NCBI GenBank assembly: GCA_965644295.1 | Contig: CBFFRP010000009.1 | Span: 75,298-139,297, forward strand | Length of the DNA stretch: 64,000 bases | From: Paraphysomonas bandaiensis | Lineage: Eukaryota > Protista > Chrysophyceae | Direction of reading: 5' to 3' | Shown: one piece after another, positions 31,018 to 48,434 of the stretch | Position numbering within the stretch: position 1 is the first letter of the stretch | Layout of the letters: every line of letters begins with the position of its first letter | Translations under genes and position numbers: made by a program | Notes under the pieces: model-generated | Databases searched by the model: none | Seen by the model: the letters and a program-made list of their open reading frames with translations, nothing else | Told to the model about the DNA's origin: nothing

Positions 31018-33550
31018 CTACTGGTATTTGTCAATGGCGTCAATCATCTGCTTACACTCCGAAGAATAATTAATGGGATCTACTTTCATAATCGAGCTCT
31101 TCACCCTCATTTCATCGTTCACACTTTCTTGTTTAATCCGTGCCTACAAATTGGTACGTTAATAAAGTATTCATAAACTACCTTAAGGATGCTTACTTTT
31201 CCAATGAGAGTCTGGAAGAGAGCTTTCGAGAATACCGCTTCATATCCGGCTTCATCGCCATTTAATTTCATCTGATGTAAGTCTTCTGCAGTGCACCCGA
31301 GAATTTGCTCTGCCTAAAATTACACAAAACAATGAGTAAGTCATTATCGGTTAAGGAAACTATCACTGACCGTGTCATTGAATAAACTAAACCATGACTG
31401 ACCGGAATGATCTGACATAGTTAAAGACAAAATAAACCGCCGCGTGCACTGTAAATATCATATAAAAAGGACTTGGTCAATGCAAAGTCTTAGTATTACA
31501 TAGGACTTACAGTAGGAAACTCTTGATTGCACTTTTCACAGTTCCACATTTGATTGAACCCCTCCAGCACCTGATGCACACAATTAGAGTATACCATTAC
31601 AATGAACTTTGCAACCTTTTTGTTGCAGTTACCGCTCGGACATGCAGTGTACCAGGGCTCATTGTCATGTCGGATGTAAGTAACTGTCCCTTTAAAGGAC
31701 ACATAGTCAGGCTTCTCGCCCATACCGAGACCATCATCTTTAATAGATGCAATGCTAATCCGTTGGTCAAGAGCAGCTGTTGTACCACCTACACAGCTCC
31801 AATGTCAACAATGAAGCGGAAGTGAACGTTCAACCAGAACGTACCTGTACCAGCTGCAGAAAGAGAGTTTGAGGGAGCAGAATCTCCACCCGATGCGCGC
31901 CATTGGTGCAATTGCATAGCCTCATCTATGGGAGGATTGATGGCCATATTAGAGCTCTGGCGCATACCTAGATGCAGATTAGTTTTTTCACAGCCTTTCG
32001 TCACAAACTTAACAAACTTACCCAGAGTGCGACCGTTATAATCCCCAACTACAACCCCCTTGCATGCAACAATAGGGCCTTCGTGCCAAGCTGTATCAGC
32101 CTGAATTCCACGTTAAATACTTAAAACTACATGAACTTTACAGTGATTTCATACCAGTGCCTTATCTCCCCACAAAGTGAGTCTCACGTCATATCCCGAG
32201 TCGTCATAAAGGGTCAGATCTCTCTTGTGTAGTACCTTTCCACCCATCTTCTGAGACACCACTTCAGAACAATCTGTGGCACTACGGACGATACCCAGAA
32301 CATCCACAGTGGAGTTAACTTCAACAGTTGACAAGTTCGCAATCTTCGTAAAATTATAGCTCATGGACTTGATGTCGTCATCGTCAGCTGCTGGTCGAAT
32401 TTCACTATTTGCGTCGAATGTCAACTCGTAGTCGTTCTTTATCGCGCTGTATTTTCTATCTCCGACTTTCAATCGCCCACCAGCAAACGTATATACCTAT
32501 CCCATGATTATATCTTTCCTGACAATATATAGTATGAACATTTGCACCTTTTGTTGCTCAAGAAGTTGGAACCACTTTTCACAGGAGTCCTTAAAAAACG
32601 TAGCACGAATCTCACCACCGTCGCTGTCTAACAAATCAATAGAAAAGAGAGTACCCTCGCCACGGGCGTTAGACCAACGACGAATATCACTCTTGTTGGT
32701 AATTCTAGCTTTTATGGTCCACCTAGTGCAACATATATATTACATACTGGCTTGATGATCACTGGTATTCAACCTGTTGGAGTAGGGGTTCAGTGCACGG
32801 ATGGGTACAATGCCCTGATTATGCCCGGGGCCATCCCTTGCAGTTGGCCGATGGCTAGACTGCATAGTGTCATATACCGAGGTACCACCAGATGGTCGGG
32901 AAGAGTATGGTGACGATTTATAGTCAGCGATACCACCGGTGCGTGGAGGATAATTAGCTGCTGGCGGCTGCGGTGGATGTGGTGGAAGTGAGGAGGGAGG
33001 AACATTAGGGACATTTGCAGCTGTCATATCGCCAGCGTCATCACCATCAAATCCGATGACATCAAGATCAAGTAGCACTATTATCCTGAATTTATAATTA
33101 CTGAAGGTCAAAGACACACATATGGCACGTACTGCTGTCCTTGTAGATTATTCAGTACGAAATCCGACAGCTTTATCACACTCCCAACTTTCAGTGTCCC
33201 GCCAGCAACCATCTAAATTACCATCATATAAGTTTATTTATGAATTATATGAATAATAAGAGTGTATTACATCATTTTTTTGTGTCGCCAGCATAGCATG
33301 AATTGTATCTCTCCCATCCATAAGAGATAACCTGTTCACACTCTTAGTTCAAGACACTCTCTTAGTCTATACCGTCATACCTGTATCTCTGTGGTTTGTT
33401 TTCACCAGGCTGTGTCAGCCCCTTTATTTGAGCTATCTATACAACAGCATCAACACACTCACTCATCCTATCGTCAAGTCTTACCTTCACCACGGGGTGA
33501 AAGTCTGTTTCCCCACTAAAAATTCGGGATATTGAACCGGGAATTGCCAT
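31018..33550 (-). CDS. RPA1: Replication protein A 70 kDa subunit; multi-exon
   Basis: PIRALNPYSNR/WTIKARITNK, GEGTLFSIDLLD, IKNDYELTF, VDVLGIV, VRLTLWG, and the zinc ribbon WYTACP...CNKK...CEKC; SDHSG. Confidence 0.96.
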
Positions 33551-35031: not shown

Positions 35032-36053
35032 TTATTCATCACCAGTTTGGAGGGAAAACTCTCTAACATTCTCGCGCGACGATATGTTCTCTGAAGACTC
35101 CACATCAGCATCGCATGGAGCGTCTTTAGAATATAAGATAGAGAAAAGAAACCCTTTCCATTTCTTACGAACATTTGGTAGCGAATGGTATACAATGGCG
35201 TTGCAAAATCCTACGCAGTAACCCGTGTAGAATAATTTTGATAGCCATGGGCGGTGATACCCAAAAAAAGATGCAATTCGAAATACACACGGAAAGAAAA
35301 AACAAACCAGAATTACGACAGGAAACCATATGAGTTGTCGAACCACAGTTTGTATCGCAAGTGATGTGTCAGACACGCAAAGACGCTCCGGATATACAGT
35401 ATTAGATATCTGTTGCACTGATTACAAAAATATAGGCGAGAAGATAACTTTACCAGTAAAGTTCTTACACGACCGCTAACAGAAATATACACTGCGATAT
35501 CGTACACCATGGTAATCCAGAGGGGTATGTAGAAGCACACCAGGATCATAAAGACCCTTTTCTCGCTGCTAATGTCATCGCGAATCCAACTACAAAAGAA
35601 CTATGATCTACTATTCTTGTTAATATTAGTAAACTCGACTTACCAGATGTGTCTGGAGTTATCTCTGCCGTATGCATCCACTACAGCTGGAACGAGAGAT
35701 AACAGAGCTGGTATCCCCCATATAGCTATCATTTCACTACTGTTAACAATAGACTGGGTAATGTTTCTCTTTCTTCCGCGATAAAAAAGAATAAATATGG
35801 TGCGCGCAATGAAGAATGAAGTCGTACAAGTAGTGAGGCCAAAGTAATTTGAACATACAGCTTGTATTCGGCACCACGTATCAGTAGCATTCGTAAAAGC
35901 CCCAGATACATACATTCCGAAATCAGATAGCGCCAGAAAAAATAAGAGCTGGCCACATCCTGTTCTGAGGCTACTAAACATGGCTAGACTGAGAAATATT
36001 GAGCATGATCCGAGCACGCTGAAGCTGAACAATATGATCAAAGCAATATTCAT
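35032..36053 (-). CDS. 7TM GPCR of the cAMP-receptor/GCR1-like class, 3 exons
   Basis: SVLGS..I, LLFFLALSD, CRIQA, AIWGIP, C/WI across an intron, FYIPLW, LIWFPVVILVCFF and GFCNAIVY; seven hydrophobic segments. Confidence 0.8.
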
Positions 36054-37884: not shown

Positions 37885-38713
37885 CTATAGTTATATATAA
37901 CCACGGATAATAAGGAGGCTATATGGTACATGGCTATATGTGCTATATCGTCCGGAGCTCAAAATTTTGCCCACAACGCCCGACTTTTCAAATCTAGACA
38001 AGGACCGATACTTAGGAAACATCTATTTCTTGGTACTGCAGGATAGCTGTATACAATCTAGATATCAGGATTAGCTACAATTTAACCTAATAAAACACTC
38101 ATATTGTTTTATACCAATTGTATCTATACTACTGTGTGCTTATGGCTTATGGAATAATAGCAATTGTACTAGATTAACTCTAAACTATAAATCCCCAAAT
38201 TTTAACAATAGCTATATAACAAAAGTGTCCCCACCACACGATGTTGAGGGTTGAGGTAATAGCAACTGCGTATTGAAATTCGTACATGAACGTGATGCTG
38301 AATGCAAAAAGTTGTAGTCGCGATGGGCTTGTTGTTGTCATTTTTGATATATATCACACTTATATACAACTGCTTAATCTATGTCAGTGCAACGAACTCG
38401 AAATGCTGTAAAATGTATAAAGTGACCCTAACTCTGCTCTATAACACCTTCTGCATCAGACGTGGCACTTGAACTCTCCTGTAATATAAAGATAGGTTGC
38501 TTTAAAGGTTGAAATAGAACTTGGAGTGTTTAATGATCTGATTTCGAAATTTTACTCTTCATTGTGGCGTTTTTTCTAAGTTTGTGCGTTTGTGCAATGT
38601 AAAATGTATGAAATCACTTTCAAATGTCTGTCAATATCATAACTAAGATATTAGAGTGTGTCTACATTTGCCCAGAGCTAATATGGGCGTTCTGTTGAAC
38701 CCAATTCAGGTCA
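37885..38713 (+). pseudogene. Degenerate coding relic (repeat family B), second copy
   Basis: Collinear similarity to the reverse complement of 17695-18627. Residual peptides KVEIELGVFNDLISKFYSSLWRF and SASDVALELSCN. Confidence 0.75.
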
Positions 38714-39091
38714 AAAAATGCTTTTTAAGACAAAATGGGGATAAATATCTTGAATAGACGTATCATTAACTGAACTTCCTTAATTATATTCATCCGCTAC
38801 AACTACGTGTTGGTTTCGATAGCTCACTATTACCTCACTTCAATTGTACAATCTACATCGTACATCGTATCAAACAGTAGAACTCAACATGGACTGTTCA
38901 CTTTATTTTAACCTTTATCTCATAACGAGAGGTACGCAAAACTAGAATTGAATTTCTACATTCTACTTGTTACGCTACCTCATCTAAACAAACGCATTGA
39001 GTTGTCTGGTAGACTGAGCTTTTCGGACGCCATATCGGCAACATACTCAGGGTAACTTGGAAGCATAATTGCAACTACGAGTAGAATACGC

Positions 39092-42000
39092 TTAGAGAGC
39101 ATGACTCGTTCCAACAATACAATCATCCTCAGAAGTAACAATTTGACTTTCAGAGTTACTCTGTCGAGTGGTCTGGTGATCATCATTTTGATCGCCTATA
39201 GAATCGCAGTTCTCATCTGGTACTCCGAGCTCAATATCCCCAGTGTCGGCGCTATCAACGATATTATCATCGTCTTCTTCAATGGCTTCGAACTGATTTC
39301 CCGCGCTCGATTTCCGGCGGACAGAAGATCGTATGGACCCCGCCGAATGCTACAACAATCACGATCATACATTTCAAAATAGTAGTCGATACATACCTCA
39401 CTGACAACCCTGGGCTCAGAGGTAACAATGGTGTTTCTGCGATGGCCTTCGTCCATTCCACCTGTACATATACTCATTACGGGTTTTAGTACAAGGTTTA
39501 CGATTGTGGGTACCTGAAGAATAGGACACATACACACTTGATCCATCACGATAGAAAAACTCGAATAGGTCATTCGTAGCGTCAGGAGTGGCACCAATAT
39601 TAGCGTCCTGGTTCAGTGGATTGTTACCAACGAATGCCATCGATGACTGATCTGTGTCAGTTGCTGAAGGCAATGATATACGTGGTGTACAATCCAGAGT
39701 CTTGATAGTTTTCTTACTGCGGGGGTGACATCGTTGAAGCATTCCTGTCCAGGAAGCATTTAAAAACATATGGTATAACACATATTTCAATACCGTGATT
39801 AGGAGGTACATTGGGAATATACCACAGTAAGCACTTCAAACGGCCATGAACGGCGCACATAATCAAGAAGAAATTGAAAAATGGACTGAGTAATACTGTC
39901 TCCAATTTGACCTGCAACTGCGGCTGGTTTCTCCAGCATATATAATTGATATAGAGATTTCGCAGAAGTGGCCAAATGAAGAGCATAAACTTAAGCAAGA
40001 AGAATTCAATAATAAACCCTCTTGACAATATCACCACGCAGAACGGGATGTACATCACTTGAACAAATATGATTTTGTATTCACGAAAGCGATACATACG
40101 AAACGCAATGTTTGACAAAATTCCTCCCTTGGTGTCGTAAGTAAAGAACGAGTACAGACTTTTTCCTGTACATTTTATTATCGAACACATATACATGTAT
40201 AGAAGGCGCACTTCTATCGACAGCTTACCGGTAATGCGAAGAGCGGACACCGTCCATCTATGAGCCCTTTGCTTCCATAACGATGAGGCGCCATATCCCT
40301 GTACTCTTCCTCCACCCGCGCAGTTAACCAGGATTCCAGGTGCAAATGTTGTAACCATACATCTGGTTTCAGCACGGATGGCATACCCCTACCACCAGAA
40401 ACAGACGATAAGAAACAGAAAAGGAATAACTAAAATTTAACATACCATGTTCAGTGTGGTGAATCCACCAAATATGTCCTCTCCAAACGGAAGTGCTGGG
40501 TGAGCCCCAAACACTTCAATAAATCTATCCCGTCGCCACATGCCTGGTGAAAGGAGAATTAATATACAAGATGGAAATATATCAGTTGTCAACACTGCTG
40601 TACCTGCGGGCCCAGGTACAAACGCACGAGTAGCTATCTTAGCCTGTGTTGCATGAAAGTGGTCTGTGATCTTGTACCAGAAATCAGTGAAATTAGTAAG
40701 TCGGTTCTCGCGGTGAGAGCTTCTTAGGAATGCTACTGCTGAAACATGCTCACCGCCGTCTCTTTTGAAGTGAGTCTCGTCGAATACCATGTGGTCAGAC
40801 AGCAACGTGTCATCATCCAGATGTATAATATACTGGCAGCGCTTGGGAAGTCGGTGGCATCCAGTCCAAAGAGCGCGAGTTTTATGACCCTGAGATATGA
40901 AGCAGTATTGAATCTTGGGATCAATGGCCTTGACGACTTCGAATGTATTGTCTGCTGGCCAGTTGAAGTTACCGTTGTCGCATATACATATATTTTCTGC
41001 AGGAATATACTTCAACACCTATATATGTATATAAATGATATGATGTTGGGCAATGATAAAATATACAAAAGTTATTTTACCTGCTTCACAACACCACCAA
41101 TCTCTAGTGCACTCTTATGGCATGGAATGACGACCCCAATACGACGTAGGTATTCCGGGTCATTCTTAAAATTCTTACCCTCATCAATTTGTTGCGGGAG
41201 AAAGAGTAGCGGGATAAAGAATATACCTGTCAATACACAAGAATTACTACCTAACCAAACACTAGAGAGGTGCAGAGTATCTTCAAGAGATTGGCCCTAG
41301 GTGTCACACAGACAATACGTACCAGTGTAGGTGAAGGTAACAGTCATGTACGTGGCAATGTCCTTGACAGTCCACTCGTGCACTTTCGTCCATGGTAAAA
41401 GGCCGTCCTCGTCCGTGACAGGGTTTCCGTAAAGAACCATCGAGAACAAAATCATTCCCATGACAGAGCCGTATCCAAATATATACCAAAATATCTTACG
41501 TTGCATAGTTGCCTGCCAAGGTTCCTCCCAAACAAACCTACGCACACGAATCACAATATACTCTACCAATTATTTCGGCAATATCTGACAAAAATATAGA
41601 GCGCTAGTTTACGGAATTAACCACAACTGCACTTACTGAGAGTCGTGCACGAAGTCCTCTTCTTCAGCCCACACGAAGGTGTCTCTCAGGGCATTCATGG
41701 CCACCAAAGAGCCTTGCATGGAGCTCTGGCGACTGGCCATAGTAAAGGTTCTAGTCCGAGCACCAGTGGCGGTGTAGGCTCTGGAGCGTTGTGGGGTGTA
41801 GCTCTGGCTTCGCTGCCGTTCCAAAACATCTTTCGGATTACTAGCATTGGCATCATCCAGCCCCTGATATATCGGATACTATCAAAAGAGAATATGACAA
41901 CCACTAGATACATACCGTAGTTTCTGCGTCTGCAAATACACTTTCAAATTCGTGTTCGTACTTTTTATCAATTGCTCGATTTGCCCAGTAGAACATACAC

Positions 42001-43261
42001 ACACAGATCATAATGCAGAGTACTGGTACGGCAGACATAAGCACAAGCTCTCCATCAACATCGTTAAGATCGAAATGTTTCTTGTCCTACACACATGTAA
42101 GCTTTTATGATAATTTCCCGCAAAACAAAGCAGATGAATAACTCCCAAGTAGACACAATACATAATTGTGAACGTCACGAAACTGAACAGGAGCAAGAAT
42201 CACCTTCGATTCGTTATCGTCACCAACGATATCGTCGTTAGTGACTGCGTCGTCGTCACCCTGGCATGGGGCCCCACAAAGCGCACCATTTCCTGTGTAA
42301 ACCTCATTGTAGCTTGACGATATATCGCCAACTCGAATAGATGCAAAATCGAAAGCTGATATAGATCAAAGTTATGACATATCGTAGAGAAGCACTCCCA
42401 CAAACCGTTCCACGTCGTGCCGGTCTCAAAACCAAATTTCCACTGCAAAGAATAAGTTCCAATTTTAACATACGGAGCGTTGGTTCGATTGTAAGACGTC
42501 GCAACATTGGTCGCAGCGACAATTTGCTCGTTGTTCCTCCACACATTAACATATCCTATAAATTTTATATTGGTACAAAGGTGAAAATATTGGAAACCAT
42601 CCACCTGTCGTATCATATGCCACCATGTCAATCTCAACCACCCAGTCTATCCATTCCCCAACTACAGTTTTCCCGAGGGATTTGTAGATACACGTAGCAT
42701 CGGTGTCTTCAGGTTTACTATACCCGCATATATTCAACTCAAACGTTTCCCCTGTAATCAATAAGACTTCAGACCTACGAGTAGCCCACGACTGCATCAT
42801 ACCTAAATTTCGCAAACCAAAATTTGGAGATAGTCCCAAGTTATCTCCGCTATGAAGCTGCATGAAGTATACCACATCCTTCCTATCAAAATGTGAGTGT
42901 GCATGACCACATACAGTGTACTTATAAATTACTCTGTGTCATTTTGTCCTCTCCATTCCCAAGAGGAGGGGATGCGCACTGAAAGTCCGAACCAATATGT
43001 CCCAATATCGTCTGCTAGCACCTCATCTCTAATGGATTGTAACGTTGCAACTTCCGCACGAAAACAATATTCAGATGGCTCCGTTGTTGCACAGTAAGTC
43101 AGATTAGTTTCCAATATTTCAGAGGATAATAATTGTGCATGCGCAGAATCTCCACTCAAATCCAACTGCCAACTCGCTAAATCTTGAAACGTTTCATTTA
43201 AAGTCAATGTTGCAGATATGGTGGCCGGAATTAATAATAGCAAGACAAGCCGTGCACTCAT
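39092..43261 (-). CDS. Fusion protein: signal peptide + polysaccharide lyase-like domain (heparin lyase I/PF14099-like) + TM + processive GT2 polysaccharide synthase; ~16 exons, roughly 1,050-1,100 aa
   Basis: Lyase part: RAEV, YWFGLSVRIP, QLH, GEWIDWV, GYVNVWRN, PYVKIGTY, FASIRVG. Phase-0 GT-AG introns 42087-42203 and 41864-41915 join it in frame through a TM exon (42086-41916) to the GT2 part. GT2 part: VVIPCH, ICDNG, GHKTRAL, HLDDDT, GPAGMWRR, GEDI, QRAHRW, then C-terminal TMs. Stop at 39092-39094. Confidence 0.8.
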
Positions 43262-46183
43262 ATTTGTTGCTTCAATCAATAGTAGAGAGTAAGATGTAGC
43301 TGATTCAATCTATAAATAGTGTATTATCTATTGCACTATATTTGGGGTCTACGATCACAGCTGTACACGATCTTCTATATTTTAAAATGCACAGTTGTGT
43401 GTGTACCACACTCGACGTTGAGGTGCATACCCCCCACACACTGTACATATATACACACATATCCTTGCTGCTGGTGTGCTTATTCGGGAGGGAGCTATTG
43501 GTAGCAACTGATACCGTACTCCGGATAAAAAACTAAAATTTTCAGTGAGTGTTGCACAGTGTGAGAAATCTCATACTGTACCTCCAAAACACAAAATCTG
43601 GGGTTTTGATGTGCAAGTTCCCAATGTGTTCTAGAAATGATATGTACACAGTATATCTACATATCTACGATATATATAGCGCTGATATACTATTCCTATC
43701 AGCAGATCAAGCAACTGGAACTGTGCTGTGCAGTGAGAACTACAGCACACAGTTCATTGCGCTTATATCCAGTCACCAGAGAGTCTCCTTGCAAGGAGTG
43801 GATACGGTTACTATTGTTACTGATATCACAGTGTTGTCGCATATATACATGTAAAAATATCAACAGTGTTTCGCTACTATGATTTAGAAGTAACAACATA
43901 AACTGAAATCTTTGGATGAAACGCGTGAGTGGTAGAAGTTGTCATCAGACAGCAAAGGCGGATACAGCGGCGACTATTGGAACCCGAGTTGTATAGTGAC
44001 TCTCATAACAGTTTTAGCCGGAGTATATTACTTTCGGTCTACATAGCGGACAAATAAAAGCCGTTGTTCAGTACTAGGGAACCTATACTTGTGATGCGCG
44101 TATATATTGCAGTACAGTCCTACGCTCGGATTTTTGCAGATAATACATCAATAATTACCCTGGTGAAGGATTTTAGTGAAAATCACAAGAAGGCGACGCT
44201 TTACATCATATTAAAAAGCTTCCGTCAAAGAAGTATGTTGCTGGCACGTTATGTCGTCCCAACTGCGTATTATATTGGACGTATAGGCCTATGACACAAA
44301 GCAGAAGTTTTATTTGCAGATCATTTGGACAATAGTCTATGTCACGGTTTCTAATTTCTTGCATTCGTATCGATAGGTATGTAGACTTGGACTAGTCATA
44401 GGAGGGTGATTGTAATCCCCGTTGAAGTTAAAACAAGTTAAAAAGATTGTCCCCTATTATCAACTTGTGGGTGGTTCTTGCATTATAAAAATATGACAGA
44501 AATGGGTGTGCAACCTAAGCTCTGGTCGCTATAAGTTGTACCACATAGATGTAGCAGAATAGATTATATCAATATTATTGACCCGTTTGGAGCTCTTGCG
44601 ACACCAATATTTAAAAGCAAAACATGCAACAAGTCATGTAGTGACGTGCAAAAGTGTGCCATTTCTTTGTGCTAAGAATTCAATTTGAAAGATCTCATGT
44701 AACTATGAGACATTTTGGGATGATATCTAGTAGCACCTTTGTCAAAAATACAAGATTTCCTCGTTGATAAGTGTTCTGTTTGGTGGGAGGAATTTAAAAG
44801 TGAGAAACCAGTCTCAAATGGCATTTCTGAATTCAGAATGGAGTGAACACTGAGCATGTTGAACTCATGTTTTTTCTTAAGGCTTCCTAGAATTGTACAC
44901 CACAGCCCGTAAGTGACGAACTGCTTCACTGATAATATATTTAGATACGTTTGCATGTATGTGTGTTAGCAATACTTAAAATTGAGTCACACTTCCAATA
45001 GTGTGTCAGAAGTTAGGTTAGGACTCTTGTCGGAAATTTAAATGCCCGTCTAGCTCACATTTACACTAAAAGTTAGTCATTGAATACCTCCAATGAGTGC
45101 ATGAAATAAGTATCACGACGATCATTGTGGAGGTGCTCAGTTTTTTCTTTCTTAACGACATTTGATACTTTATTGTTTTTGCTTGGTGAGGTTAAAGTGT
45201 ATACTGATCCTTATACTGTCTACTGCCTATATTTATACTATTCGCAGCAGGAGGGTCATTGCTTAGGCAAAAAAAAAACAAGCTACAATATCGACTATCG
45301 ACGCCATCTATATATGCATAATCTTTGAATGGAAAGGGAGTTTTGAGTTAGCTTAAAGCATAGGAAATAAAAGCTGTAATTTATGAAAATATATATCCGT
45401 TTAAGACGAATACAATGTTGCTAATAAAGATTTTAGTTGAAGTGTTATGAAATATATTACTAGATAAACCGAAGTATATAGTGACTGCTTTTATTAGATT
45501 GTTGTAAGTATATATTTTGAAATACTAAAAATTTTGATATATTTTGAAATAAGAAGATAGTTTGTATTCAACTAAATACTAAACACCAATCATCAGACCT
45601 TAAATAGACTCAATCTCATACACTCTACACTCAAGGTATTATAGTTTCTCTAACATATAATTCATAGTATGACATTAATTTATGTGCTACAGTTTTAATC
45701 TACTGTATTCTACAATTAGCGGTCATAATTCGAATTTTTTAATAGCACAAGTAAGTAAAACTCAACATTCTCTACCTTTTTTAATAGAGTTTCAATACAT
45801 GGCACATAAATATCAATTATAAAGTTACTAATGTATAGTTTATGCTCACGTAATGGGTGCATTGGTGCTATTCAATTTCAGTACTTTCAACAAGTGATTG
45901 GAATTGTTACCGTACTATGAAGGGAAAATAAACTTCCTGCAAGCATTTCGAACAATAGACAAGCATTCCTAAGAGCAAAAAAACAAATATATTAATACGA
46001 ATGTAGTCACTAAGACAGTGGTATTATTCCAACAGAAATATGTGTCACGAAATCCAAGAAACATCCACTACGGGACCAAACAAATATTCAAATCACGAAG
46101 TATTTCCCATGCCTTTTTTCCATGTGTTTTACAAAATCAGTCACATTCACATTCACATGCCTCTTGAAGGTACTGCATGTTTA

Positions 46184-48434
46184 TTATTTTTCCACACCAA
46201 CATCATAATTGCTCGAAATGTTATGGCTGGATAAGGCAACCCCGTAATGTTTTCGTCGATGTGATGTCGACCTTGCGGCAAGACGGGGGACGCTATTGAA
46301 TTCAATCTGTCGATTTGGTAATTCCTGTATGACAGCTGGGGTAGAAACTTGGAAGTCATGAGGCACTCCATTCAACAAACTACTCCGGGCAGAGATTTGA
46401 TCGCATGCTTTTTCCTGACGAACACGCCTTCTATCTTCCAGGAATTTCTCCAGTTCATTCCTCACAACAGACTCTCTATTGCTTTCCCGAGTGAAAGCCT
46501 GCCCATACTCTGAAGTGGAAGAGATGTCAACCGCAGACACAGCAGCTATTCTGTCAATTGCACCACCGCTCTCACTAGACAACATAGCAGCTGGGCACGA
46601 GTCGAAGTGCTCGCCGACACTTAATTCGTCCATAGCACTACTTCTATGGCGCGTGTTAGAGTGCTGCTCCTCCTCCGGTTCTATGAGGTCGGTATATGTT
46701 AACATACCTTCTGTCCTTGTATTCGAAACAGATGCATCGTTGGCGCCGACAAAAAAGCGGCTGATGAGAGGATTGAAACCGCTGTCTGCGTTGTCTTGTA
46801 CACTGGTGTGCCTCTTGTCATGATGGTTCATGACCCTAATGCTGGAGAGGCCTCCATTGTTATCACCGCTACTACTCTGATGACCACCATTCATATATCT
46901 ATGTTCTACCGGTGTGTCCTGGTTGTACAAGTACGATGTTACAGAATCTCGGAGCTGCTTCAGGCTACGTGACTGCTCGTACGCGGCTTGGTAAGCGAAT
47001 GAATTTGGGGAGTCAGTATTACGAGTAGAGTTCCTCTCACTATCTTTCTCGTGTACGTATGGACTGTGAAGAGGGTCCGATGCAATGGTAGAGAAGTGAC
47101 TACCATCATCATTTACGCTACCAGAAGAACTTTGTCGATCAAAAAGTGGCCCGCTATTAGCGGGGAGCGATACGAACTGCTTTCGTTGTCTGCTTGCACC
47201 TATGCTACGGGATACCTCCCAATCTAGTCCACGAATATCTCCTTGGATATGCCGCGTAGAAGAACTGATGCTTTTAGCAGATATCGAGTCATTGTTCTCT
47301 TCGATACTCTGCGTGTTTTTTTGGAAAACTCTATCTCGAGAGGGACTTGGGGTTCGGCTCAGTGAAGTGTCCACCCATAAGCCACCTGGACTAGCTGCCC
47401 TCTGCATTCGGGCAGCACGGTCGACTCTCGCTACTTCCCTCTTATATACCAGTGGCTTCACTCGTAAAAGACTGTGCTGATTCAGCAGGGGGCGGGTAAG
47501 AGCCTTCGGTGATGGACTTGAGACTGTTCCGCTGCACACATACCCTCCACGTACTATACCGCCAGCCACAGTAAACCTCTACAATACATATTATTATTCT
47601 CTGGAAAAGCTATTCAATATAGGTACACCTGTAGAGGTAAGCTTTTCTCCCCCTTGCTATCATTAGCAGTTGAGGTGATGAAAATTTCAAACTCGGCTGG
47701 TAGTTCAAACTGCTTCTCCAGTGCATGCATCATATGCTCAAGTGTGCATTTAGACCGCAGCACCACCATGCCCCTGTGTGTGGGCCGCTTATCGTCACAG
47801 TACTCGGCAGGGAGAACTAGCAGAGAAAAAGTATGGTCAGATAATGAAGAAGTTGTTGGGGTGTTGACAGTCGGGGAACGAACACGCGGGGGGCTTTCAG
47901 GCCGGACCCGGAGCGGGGCCTGTCGGCTCGTACTTTCGCCTAGGCTAGACTGGTGCCCTAATGAAATGCCTGGTGCATAACACATGATACGTGAAAACCA
48001 AATAAGTAAAACAACTCACTCTCGTATAGTGACCCTTGATGGGAATGAAATAGCGGTTGCACATCGTCAATGGGATGTCGGTAATGTCGCCGCGAGTATA
48101 TCGAGTCAGAGCTTCTGCTGCGACGACTGCGAGTAGTGCTTGTCGAGTTATTTCTACTCCTACTTCTACTTCTACTGGTGCAGGTGGAGCCAAATAACCT
48201 CGATCCTTTATATCCAGATGTGCTGTTGCTATTACTTCGACTTCTTCCGCCCGCAGAGCCAGATCGTGTTCTGGACCGTCCACGGGATAGCAGACTCCCG
48301 TAAGAGCTAATGCTTGCATCACATCTGCCCTCATTCTCAGACACAACCGATTTTGGGGGAGAAAATCTCCTTTCTGATATATGTAGTTTGCTCTTATCGG
48401 CTACAATAACGGGGGTTAGTTCGCCTATGCGCAT
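46184..48434 (-). CDS. Hypothetical Ser/Arg-rich, largely disordered protein; 3 exons, 5' end uncertain
   Basis: ORFs 47958-48437, 47614-47985 and 46184-47569 join in frame through two GT-AG introns (YE/SISLGHQ; LPLQ/RFTVAGG). No family recognised. Confidence 0.7.

Follow-up and report, generated by a model that had tools for sequence, protein, structure and literature searches.

A chrysophyte membrane protein that joins a predicted lyase-type jelly-roll ectodomain to a GT2 synthase part, encoded by one spliced gene of Paraphysomonas bandaiensis

A 64,000-nucleotide stretch of the genome of the chrysophyte Paraphysomonas bandaiensis (assembly GCA_965644295.1, contig CBFFRP010000009.1, positions 75,298–139,297; hereafter the window, to which positions refer unless another contig is named) contains a minus-strand gene for a membrane protein of 1071 aa, in which a predicted polysaccharide lyase-like domain precedes a part resembling processive glycosyltransferase family 2 (GT2) synthases. 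It was shown that both parts belong to one gene, one mRNA and one chrysophyte protein. We propose that the GT2 part would make a glucuronate-type polymer and export it through its own channel, and that the tethered, outward-facing lyase domain would cut this polymer by beta-elimination; taken as a whole, this proposal could equally well prove right or wrong.

The gene runs from the ATG at 43,261 to the stop codon at 39,094–39,092 and consists of 16 exons and 15 introns of 47–117 nt, all of the GT-AG type; the coding sequence is 3216 nt long. An original prediction, made from the DNA letters of the window, had described about ten open reading frames (ORFs) spliced by GT-AG introns into one frame; the single frame was retained and the number of pieces was not. 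For introns 5 and 6, which lie at the junction of the two halves, the rebuilt model agrees with that prediction: both are in phase 0, and splicing gives the residues NESK/DKKHF and AETT/GLDD, respectively. Without splicing of intron 5, an in-frame TAA is reached at 42,107–42,105, inside the intron, and the following ATG is found at 42,038, also as had been predicted.

Transcripts were evaluated using assembled contigs from four public RNA runs of four studies (X1, X4, X5 and X6; two culture transcriptome-like, one cDNA metatranscriptome and one polyA metatranscriptome), which were compared with the window over positions 38,600–43,800. All 15 joints were present in the RNA contigs of the four runs, with CT..AC ends on the plus strand, including those of introns 5 and 6, where crossing transcripts had been expected. 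Individual contigs of 3051–3203 nt begin in the lyase-like exons, reach the last exon and lack both of these introns. The spliced fusion mRNA is present in cultures and in the sea. In the databases, P0174, a protein of 930 aa from a contig of 3028 nt, matches residues 142–1071 of the model with 100% identity, and P0253, a 1071-aa MMETSP ORF marked 'type:complete', agrees with it at 1070 of 1071 residues. The sole difference in P0253, L44I, is the A>T variant that the RNA contigs show at window position 43,132. Single-base differences between the assembly and the X1, X4 and X6 contigs were noted at 43,132, 43,265, 41,114, 40,122, 39,695 and 39,085, only the first of them being non-synonymous, and the X5 contigs were identical to the assembly at every variant site covered; these differences are strain or allele variants.

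The same data decide whether the locus holds two adjacent genes, namely a secreted lyase ending at 42,105 and a GT2 protein starting from the ATG at 42,038. Such an arrangement could be imagined from the hydrophobic tail end given by read-through of intron 5 and from Met 304, which stands ahead of a transmembrane segment. It was rejected because intron 5 is absent from every RNA contig in the four runs, single contigs cover both halves, the complete 1071-aa ORF P0253 is known, and a paralogue on another contig, described below, has the junction within one exon. As the main product, two separate proteins are refuted, and we consider them extremely improbable. A GPI (glycosylphosphatidylinositol)-signal-like tail formed by read-through was set aside, since no contig keeps intron 5.

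The order of the parts of this single protein, with topology assigned by hydropathy, is as follows: a signal peptide (residues 1–17), the jelly-roll domain, an acidic stalk (267–299; Asp + Glu 39%), the first transmembrane segment (TM1, 300–318), a linker of 117 aa (319–435) with four R-x-x-S/T sites, TM2 (438–456) and TM3 (482–500) separated by a short outer loop, the GT-A domain, interface and transmembrane helices (about 800–880) and a 190-aa tail. The ectodomain carries five N-glycosylation sequons and six cysteines. Lyase-like motifs are located at 67–70 (FRAE), 118–120 (QLH) and 214–220 (YVKIGTY), and GT2 motifs at 553–556 (DNGN, inside CDNGN 552–556), 607–609 (DDD), 698–700 (GED) and 750–755 (QRAHRW). 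Hydropathy is consistent with the predicted arrangement, in which three transmembrane segments leave the GT2 domain cytosolic and the lyase outside; the jelly-roll domain would then be extracellular or lumenal, and the cytosol would contain the linker, GT-A domain and tail.

Analysis of P0253 using HMMER and Pfam assigned residues 75–227 to PF14099 (Polysacc_lyase) with 63.1 bits, the curated gathering threshold being 29.9 bits, and the GT2 part to PF13641 with 29.4 bits at a cut-off of 27. These are the two domains that the original prediction had expected on the spliced protein. P0174 gave 42.1 bits with PF14099, and single exon-sized pieces gave sub-threshold values (13 and 23 bits for PF14099, 13 bits for GT2). 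A family profile searched against the PDB had one match, 2ZZJ (E 1.8e-7), which is the glucuronan lyase TrGL of Trichoderma from polysaccharide lyase family 20 (PL20). The fold was studied on an AlphaFold model of P0165, a homologue with 36% identity to the window domain; the model has a predicted local distance difference test (pLDDT) score of 68.5 and a predicted template modelling score of 0.75. Foldseek ranked 2ZZJ first for this model (E 1.1e-12), and its matches include lectin-like toxin binding domains. Exhaustive comparison with VIA-align also ranked 2ZZJ first (Z 20.9, root mean square deviation 3.4 Å, 225 of 238 residues aligned), followed by glycoside hydrolase family 131 (GH131, Z 17.3), heparinase I (15.8) and PL7 alginate/glucuronan lyases (about 14–15). 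The homologue model thus bears out a lyase fold, and together with the alignments it shows the N-terminal domain as a putative PL20-like beta-jelly-roll in which R68, E70, Q118, H120, Y214 and Y220 are kept.

Conservation was assessed in 18 domains from GT2 fusions, with an overall identity of only about 35%. All 18 have R68, Y214, Y220 and W224; E70 and Q118 are each found in 17 of them and H120 in 16. The fused homologue P0186 and the first of the two tandem lyase-like domains of the environmental protein P0007 are degenerate at the lyase-type positions. The R-x-E, Q-x-H and Y...Y arrangement is the pattern of PL7 lyases. The original prediction had recognised RAE, QLH and YVKIGTY as boxes of PL7- or PL13-like lyases; they are indeed kept in a PL7-like pattern, and the nearest family proved to be PL20 instead, with Lys216 of the last box not conserved. 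The catalytic residues of TrGL are R51, H53, E55, Q91, Y200 and D206 (PMC7601620). In the hidden Markov model (HMM) alignment, its Tyr200 falls on the invariant Y220, D206 falls on a non-conserved position, and Q91 lies six positions off the family Gln.

The GT2 family of this protein is small, with 163 members at E ≤ 1e-3 among 1.84 billion representatives. Across an alignment of 31 sequences there is no variation in the D, DDD and Q-R-x-x-x-W columns or at the Asp of GED, and very little at its Gly and Glu. Modeling of the homologue P0003 (residues 470–900, pLDDT 88.6, 65% identical to the window protein there) led to best Foldseek matches with class I hyaluronan synthases (HAS; E ~1e-14, template modelling scores 0.62–0.67). 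VIA-align gave Z 26.2 for Chlorella virus HAS, with 349 residues aligned including the helical region, 24.0 for an archaeal membrane mannosyltransferase, 23.2 for Xenopus HAS1, 17–18 for cellulose synthases and about 15 for chitin synthases. A PDB search with a single GT2 sequence found no match, a PDB profile search with the family found weak generic GT-A matches only and no HAS, and NCBIfam had no match for the GT2 part. Judged by the modelled fold, the GT2 part would work as a compact channel-forming membrane synthase, and it is not a member of the hyaluronan synthases at the sequence level; in the model, the interface and transmembrane helices pack against the GT domain in the manner of the class I enzymes. 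The motifs and this HAS-like fold support the membrane-embedded processive type that had been predicted.

In the 62.6-Mb assembly (where the window lies on contig C9), a second fusion copy was found on contig C19, at about 53,240–49,500 of the minus strand, with the same order of signal peptide, jelly roll, transmembrane segment and GT2. Its identity to the window protein is about 80% in the GT2 core and 32% in the far more diverged N-terminal half (tblastn, residues 5–491, intron-derived gaps included). The end of its jelly roll, the acidic stalk and TM1 lie within one uninterrupted exon. All 12-residue words of P0176 (750 aa, MMETSP1103, genus Paraphysomonas, Chrysophyceae) were found in the translated C19 locus, which indicates that this fusion is also transcribed. 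In addition, five jelly-roll ectodomains occur in the genome on single-pass membrane proteins without a GT2 fusion. R/E, Q/H and the second Tyr have been lost from four of these (on C577, C412, C173 and C168), and the fifth, on C39, keeps the lyase-type set. Two or three C-type-lectin-like units are inserted inside the jelly roll of the C173 and C168 proteins. The C39 gene (84,985–86,508, plus strand) is an intron-free ORF with a signal peptide, a PF14099-like jelly roll bearing CYRAE, QIHGGDN and HYIKLGSY, one transmembrane segment and a Ser/Arg-rich repetitive cytosolic tail; its predicted product is lyase-like and anchored in the membrane and has no GT2 domain.

The jelly-roll ectodomain might be a non-catalytic binding or guide module, which holds the nascent chain or tethers it to the silica-scale coat; this is possible, though on the unlikely side. 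It would fit the four unfused ectodomains that have lost the lyase-type residues, two of them with lectin-type inserts, the degenerate domains of P0186 and P0007 and the lectin-like domains among the fold matches. The GT2-GH6 cellulose synthase (CesA) of tunicates is an earlier case of a fused domain whose activity is uncertain (PMC6523144). Nevertheless, the lyase-type residues persist in 16–18 of the 18 GT2-fused domains at their low overall identity, and their loss from unfused paralogues is what would be expected if the fused copies are enzymes. Retention in the fused copies together with loss in the four unfused ones argues for catalysis in the former.

PF14099-GT2 fusions were found in Paraphysomonas (both paralogues), in Ochromonas (P0223, MMETSP1105), in further EukProt transcriptomes and on many environmental contigs of up to 358 kb, and in total they cover at least three chrysophyte genera. 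The fusion is a conserved chrysophyte family and is not unique to the window. One such protein, P0205 (NCBI RYH27474.1, 1051 aa), is filed as 'MAG: glycosyltransferase [archaeon]' and clusters at 90% identity with the EukProt peptides P0177 and P0206, which bear the chrysophyte-type fusion; its contig is probably a mis-binned eukaryotic one. Distant members of the GT2 family in other protists of the stramenopile–alveolate–rhizarian (SAR) group, including Chrysophaeum, are without PF14099 and carry other fused domains: GH16 (PF00722) in P0036, P0188, P0190 and P0194, a PL7-type Alginate_lyase2 domain in P0038, sulfotransferases in P0200, and a sulfotransferase with EamA/TPT transporter-like domains in P0026. 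The look-alikes of the whole protein in the ESM Atlas are bacterial GH16-GT2 fusions. The family has the appearance of matrix-polysaccharide synthases of modular build. Database entries of the PF14099-GT2 and related fusions are unannotated or named 'hypothetical protein', and a literature search found no description of the lyase-GT2 architecture or of the related GH16-, PL7- and sulfotransferase-GT2 fusions. The fusion of a lyase-type domain to a processive GT2 synthase therefore appears to be undescribed, in line with the original prediction, although that prediction had not foreseen that such proteins already stand in the databases and are not single.

The GH16-bearing relatives suggest another function, in which the ectodomain is a GH131- or GH16-like hydrolase or transglycosylase that trims or cross-links the GT2 product, which would be a neutral beta-glycan without uronic acid. 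The GH16 domain takes the place of PF14099 on these relatives, the bacterial look-alikes are of the same type, and GH131 is second among the fold matches. We find this distinctly unlikely, as a PL20 lyase was ranked first by Pfam, by the PDB profile search and by both structure aligners, and the conserved Q-x-H and Tyr form a PL7-type lyase signature and not a pair of acidic residues.

In order to evaluate which sugar could be polymerised, the genome was searched for nucleotide-sugar dehydrogenases. A single PF00984 (UDPG/MGDP dehydrogenase) locus was detected (C64:121,209–122,276). It matches human UGDH with E 5e-139 and GDP-mannose dehydrogenase with only 1e-11, and so it encodes a UDP-glucose 6-dehydrogenase. 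A GDP-mannose 6-dehydrogenase was not detected in this search, which scores best candidates only and does not prove absence. The presence of UGDH with no detected GDP-mannose dehydrogenase favours a glucuronic acid polymer over alginate, and alginate was set aside as the product. Of the uronic acid polymers that the original prediction had offered (glucuronan, alginate or a glycosaminoglycan-like chain), those with glucuronic acid would thus be preferred.

The proposed synthesis and cleavage by one protein would proceed as follows. The GT2 part would polymerise UDP-sugars in the cytosol and thread the chain through its own channel. Lyases of the jelly-roll fold require uronic acid; the polymer would contain 4-linked uronic acid, of which glucuronic acid is the most likely kind. 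As the chain emerges, the tethered ectodomain would cleave it by beta-elimination, which would release the chain or set its length, and the released piece would be left with a 4,5-unsaturated uronate at its new non-reducing end. The protein would be a single-chain form of the bacterial pairs of a synthase with a lyase or glucanase.

Several observations weigh against this proposal. The GH16 hydrolase-type domains on related GT2 proteins indicate that the outer domain need not act on a uronic acid polymer, and GH131 is the second best of the fold matches. Lys216 of the YxKxGxY box is variable among the fused homologues. The R51–E55 strand of TrGL lies outside the HMM alignment, and R51, H53, E55 and Q91 were not placed residue by residue. 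Both structure models come from homologues, with 36% identity to the window protein in the lyase case and about 65% in the GT2 case, and confidence in the lyase model is only moderate. Finally, a minor isoform retaining intron 5 and encoding a lyase-only protein may exist and is compatible with the contig data.

It is also conceivable that the substrate of the lyase domain is foreign polysaccharide, for example from prey or a biofilm matrix, and that the domain is merely co-located with the synthase. Paraphysomonas is a phagotrophic flagellate, and the unfused membrane-anchored copy on C39 keeps the catalytic set. We regard this as improbable, since the fusion is conserved in two paralogues, in at least three chrysophyte genera and on many environmental contigs, which points to coupling with the synthase.

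Chain release and length setting are a common problem of processive GT2 synthases, and to our knowledge the known systems (cellulose, chitin, hyaluronan and alginate) use separate hydrolases or lyases for this purpose. With both parts in one chain, which is conserved among chrysophytes and is expressed at sea according to polyA metatranscriptomes, the protein offers a compact system for studying synthesis and cleavage jointly, and it points to a surface polymer, probably containing glucuronic acid, in an abundant marine bacterivore. The outer domains (PF14099, PF08787, GH16 and sulfotransferase) could help to guess the products of the orphan GT2 family of SAR protists. A broader and unlikely conjecture is that this chrysophyte/SAR clade comprises unrecognised eukaryotic synthases of acidic polysaccharides, for example glucuronan or hyaluronan-like polymers, whose own lyase domain frees the chain and fixes its size, and that the relatives fused to PL7-type, sulfotransferase or GH16 domains make other matrix polymers. 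If this were true, the fused outer domain would reveal the product of each synthase. It would also help to approach stramenopile synthases that are still orphans, among them the as yet unidentified mannuronan synthase (PMC11468063).

The coordinates of the gene are given in Table 1. Downstream of it, on the minus strand, two ORF pieces at 35,032–36,053 encode a 7TM-like multi-pass membrane protein, and an OB-fold, replication-protein-A-like fragment is located at 32,149–32,472. A further neighbour is a Ser-rich ORF at 46,184–47,569. No clustering with sugar-pathway genes was found among these three neighbours.

Table 1. Features of the fusion gene in the 64-kb window (model, gene model; RNA, RNA contigs; aa, amino acid residues).
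Feature	Position	Strand	Evidence
Transcribed region	38,884–43,352	−	RNA contigs and T22 loose end on an RNA contig; 5' end at least 43,352, polyA addition at 38,884
Coding region of the 1071-aa fusion, stop included	39,092–43,261	−	Gene model, all RNA joints, identity with P0253 and P0174
Exon 1: signal peptide (aa 1–17), start of jelly roll, FRAE (43,063–43,052)	42,933–43,261	−	Model, RNA, hydropathy
Exon 2: QLH (42,860–42,852)	42,803–42,882	−	Model, RNA
Exon 3: core strands of jelly roll	42,605–42,751	−	Model, RNA
Exon 4: WRN and YVKIGTY (42,472–42,452)	42,406–42,555	−	Model, RNA, homologue alignment
Exon 5: end of jelly roll, start of acidic stalk	42,204–42,355	−	Model, RNA
Intron 5: 117 nt, phase 0, holds the two-gene stop (42,107–42,105)	42,087–42,203	−	Removed in 4/4 runs, joint 42,085>42,203
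Exon 6: rest of acidic stalk, TM1 (42,047–41,991), start of cytosolic linker	41,916–42,086	−	Model, RNA, hydropathy
Intron 6: 52 nt, phase 0	41,864–41,915	−	Removed in 4/4 runs, joint 41,862>41,915
Exon 7: cytosolic linker, four R-x-x-S/T sites	41,637–41,863	−	Model, RNA
Exon 8: TM2 (41,482–41,426), short outer loop, first part of TM3	41,323–41,537	−	Model, RNA, hydropathy
Exon 9: end of TM3, start of GT-A domain	41,081–41,226	−	Model, RNA
Exon 10: GT-A core, DNGN (in CDNGN, 40,982–40,968), DDD (40,817–40,809)	40,604–41,018	−	Model, RNA, family alignment
Exon 11: GED (40,484–40,476)	40,446–40,543	−	Model, RNA, family alignment
Exon 12: QRAHRW (40,271–40,254)	40,229–40,388	−	Model, RNA, family alignment
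Exon 13: predicted interface and transmembrane helices after the GT domain (the region of the channel in enzymes of HAS type)	39,794–40,165	−	Model, RNA, hydropathy, structure comparison
Exon 14: cytosolic C-terminal tail	39,514–39,744	−	Model, RNA
Exon 15: tail	39,397–39,461	−	Model, RNA
Exon 16: acidic Ser-rich end of tail, stop (39,094–39,092)	39,092–39,349	−	Model, RNA

A comparison with known systems was carried out for both parts, the nearest known counterparts of which are TrGL (PL20) and class I HAS. TrGL shares the Pfam family and the beta-jelly-roll fold with the window domain and is its best structural match and sole PDB sequence match, with Tyr200 on Y220. However, it is a small secreted fungal enzyme, whereas the window domain forms the outer part of a multi-pass synthase; the sequence identity is about 14%, and R-x-E and Q-x-H of the window domain are arranged in a PL7-like manner, in contrast to R51-x-H53-x-E55 and Q91 of TrGL. 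For the GT-A domain and the membrane helices, the best fold match is class I HAS (Chlorella virus HAS and Xenopus HAS1), which likewise has D, DxD, xED and QxxRW motifs, two transmembrane helices before the GT domain and several after it, and the product of which contains glucuronic acid. Identity in the structural alignments is only 13–17%, with no match at the sequence level, and class I HAS lacks the N-terminal ectodomain, the TM1, the linker and the long tail of the window protein.

The GH16-GT2 fusions (P0036, P0188, P0190, P0194 and the bacterial ESM Atlas clusters) also combine an outer jelly-roll domain of a glycan-cleaving family with a Glyco_tranf_2_3-type GT2. In the protist fusions, the GT2 part is of the same family as that of the window protein, with 35–40% identity. 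The outer domain of all these fusions is GH16 and not PF14099. In the bacterial systems Alg8/Alg44 with AlgL and BcsA with BcsZ, the cleaving enzyme is located where the chain leaves a processive GT2; AlgL has the alpha/alpha barrel of PL5, and BcsZ belongs to GH8. The logic proposed here is the same, but the bacterial components are separate proteins in a periplasmic complex, and the precursor pathway of the alginate system was not detected in the best-candidate search of the Paraphysomonas genome. The tunicate CesA is likewise a eukaryotic processive GT2 with a domain of a polysaccharide-cleaving family in the same chain (PMC6523144). Its domain is C-terminal, GH6 cellulase-like, different in fold and chemistry and unrelated in sequence, whereas that of the window protein is an N-terminal lyase-type jelly roll. 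The tunicate GT2-GH6 CesA is the nearest known architecture, and Alg8/AlgL and BcsA/BcsZ are the nearest known logic.

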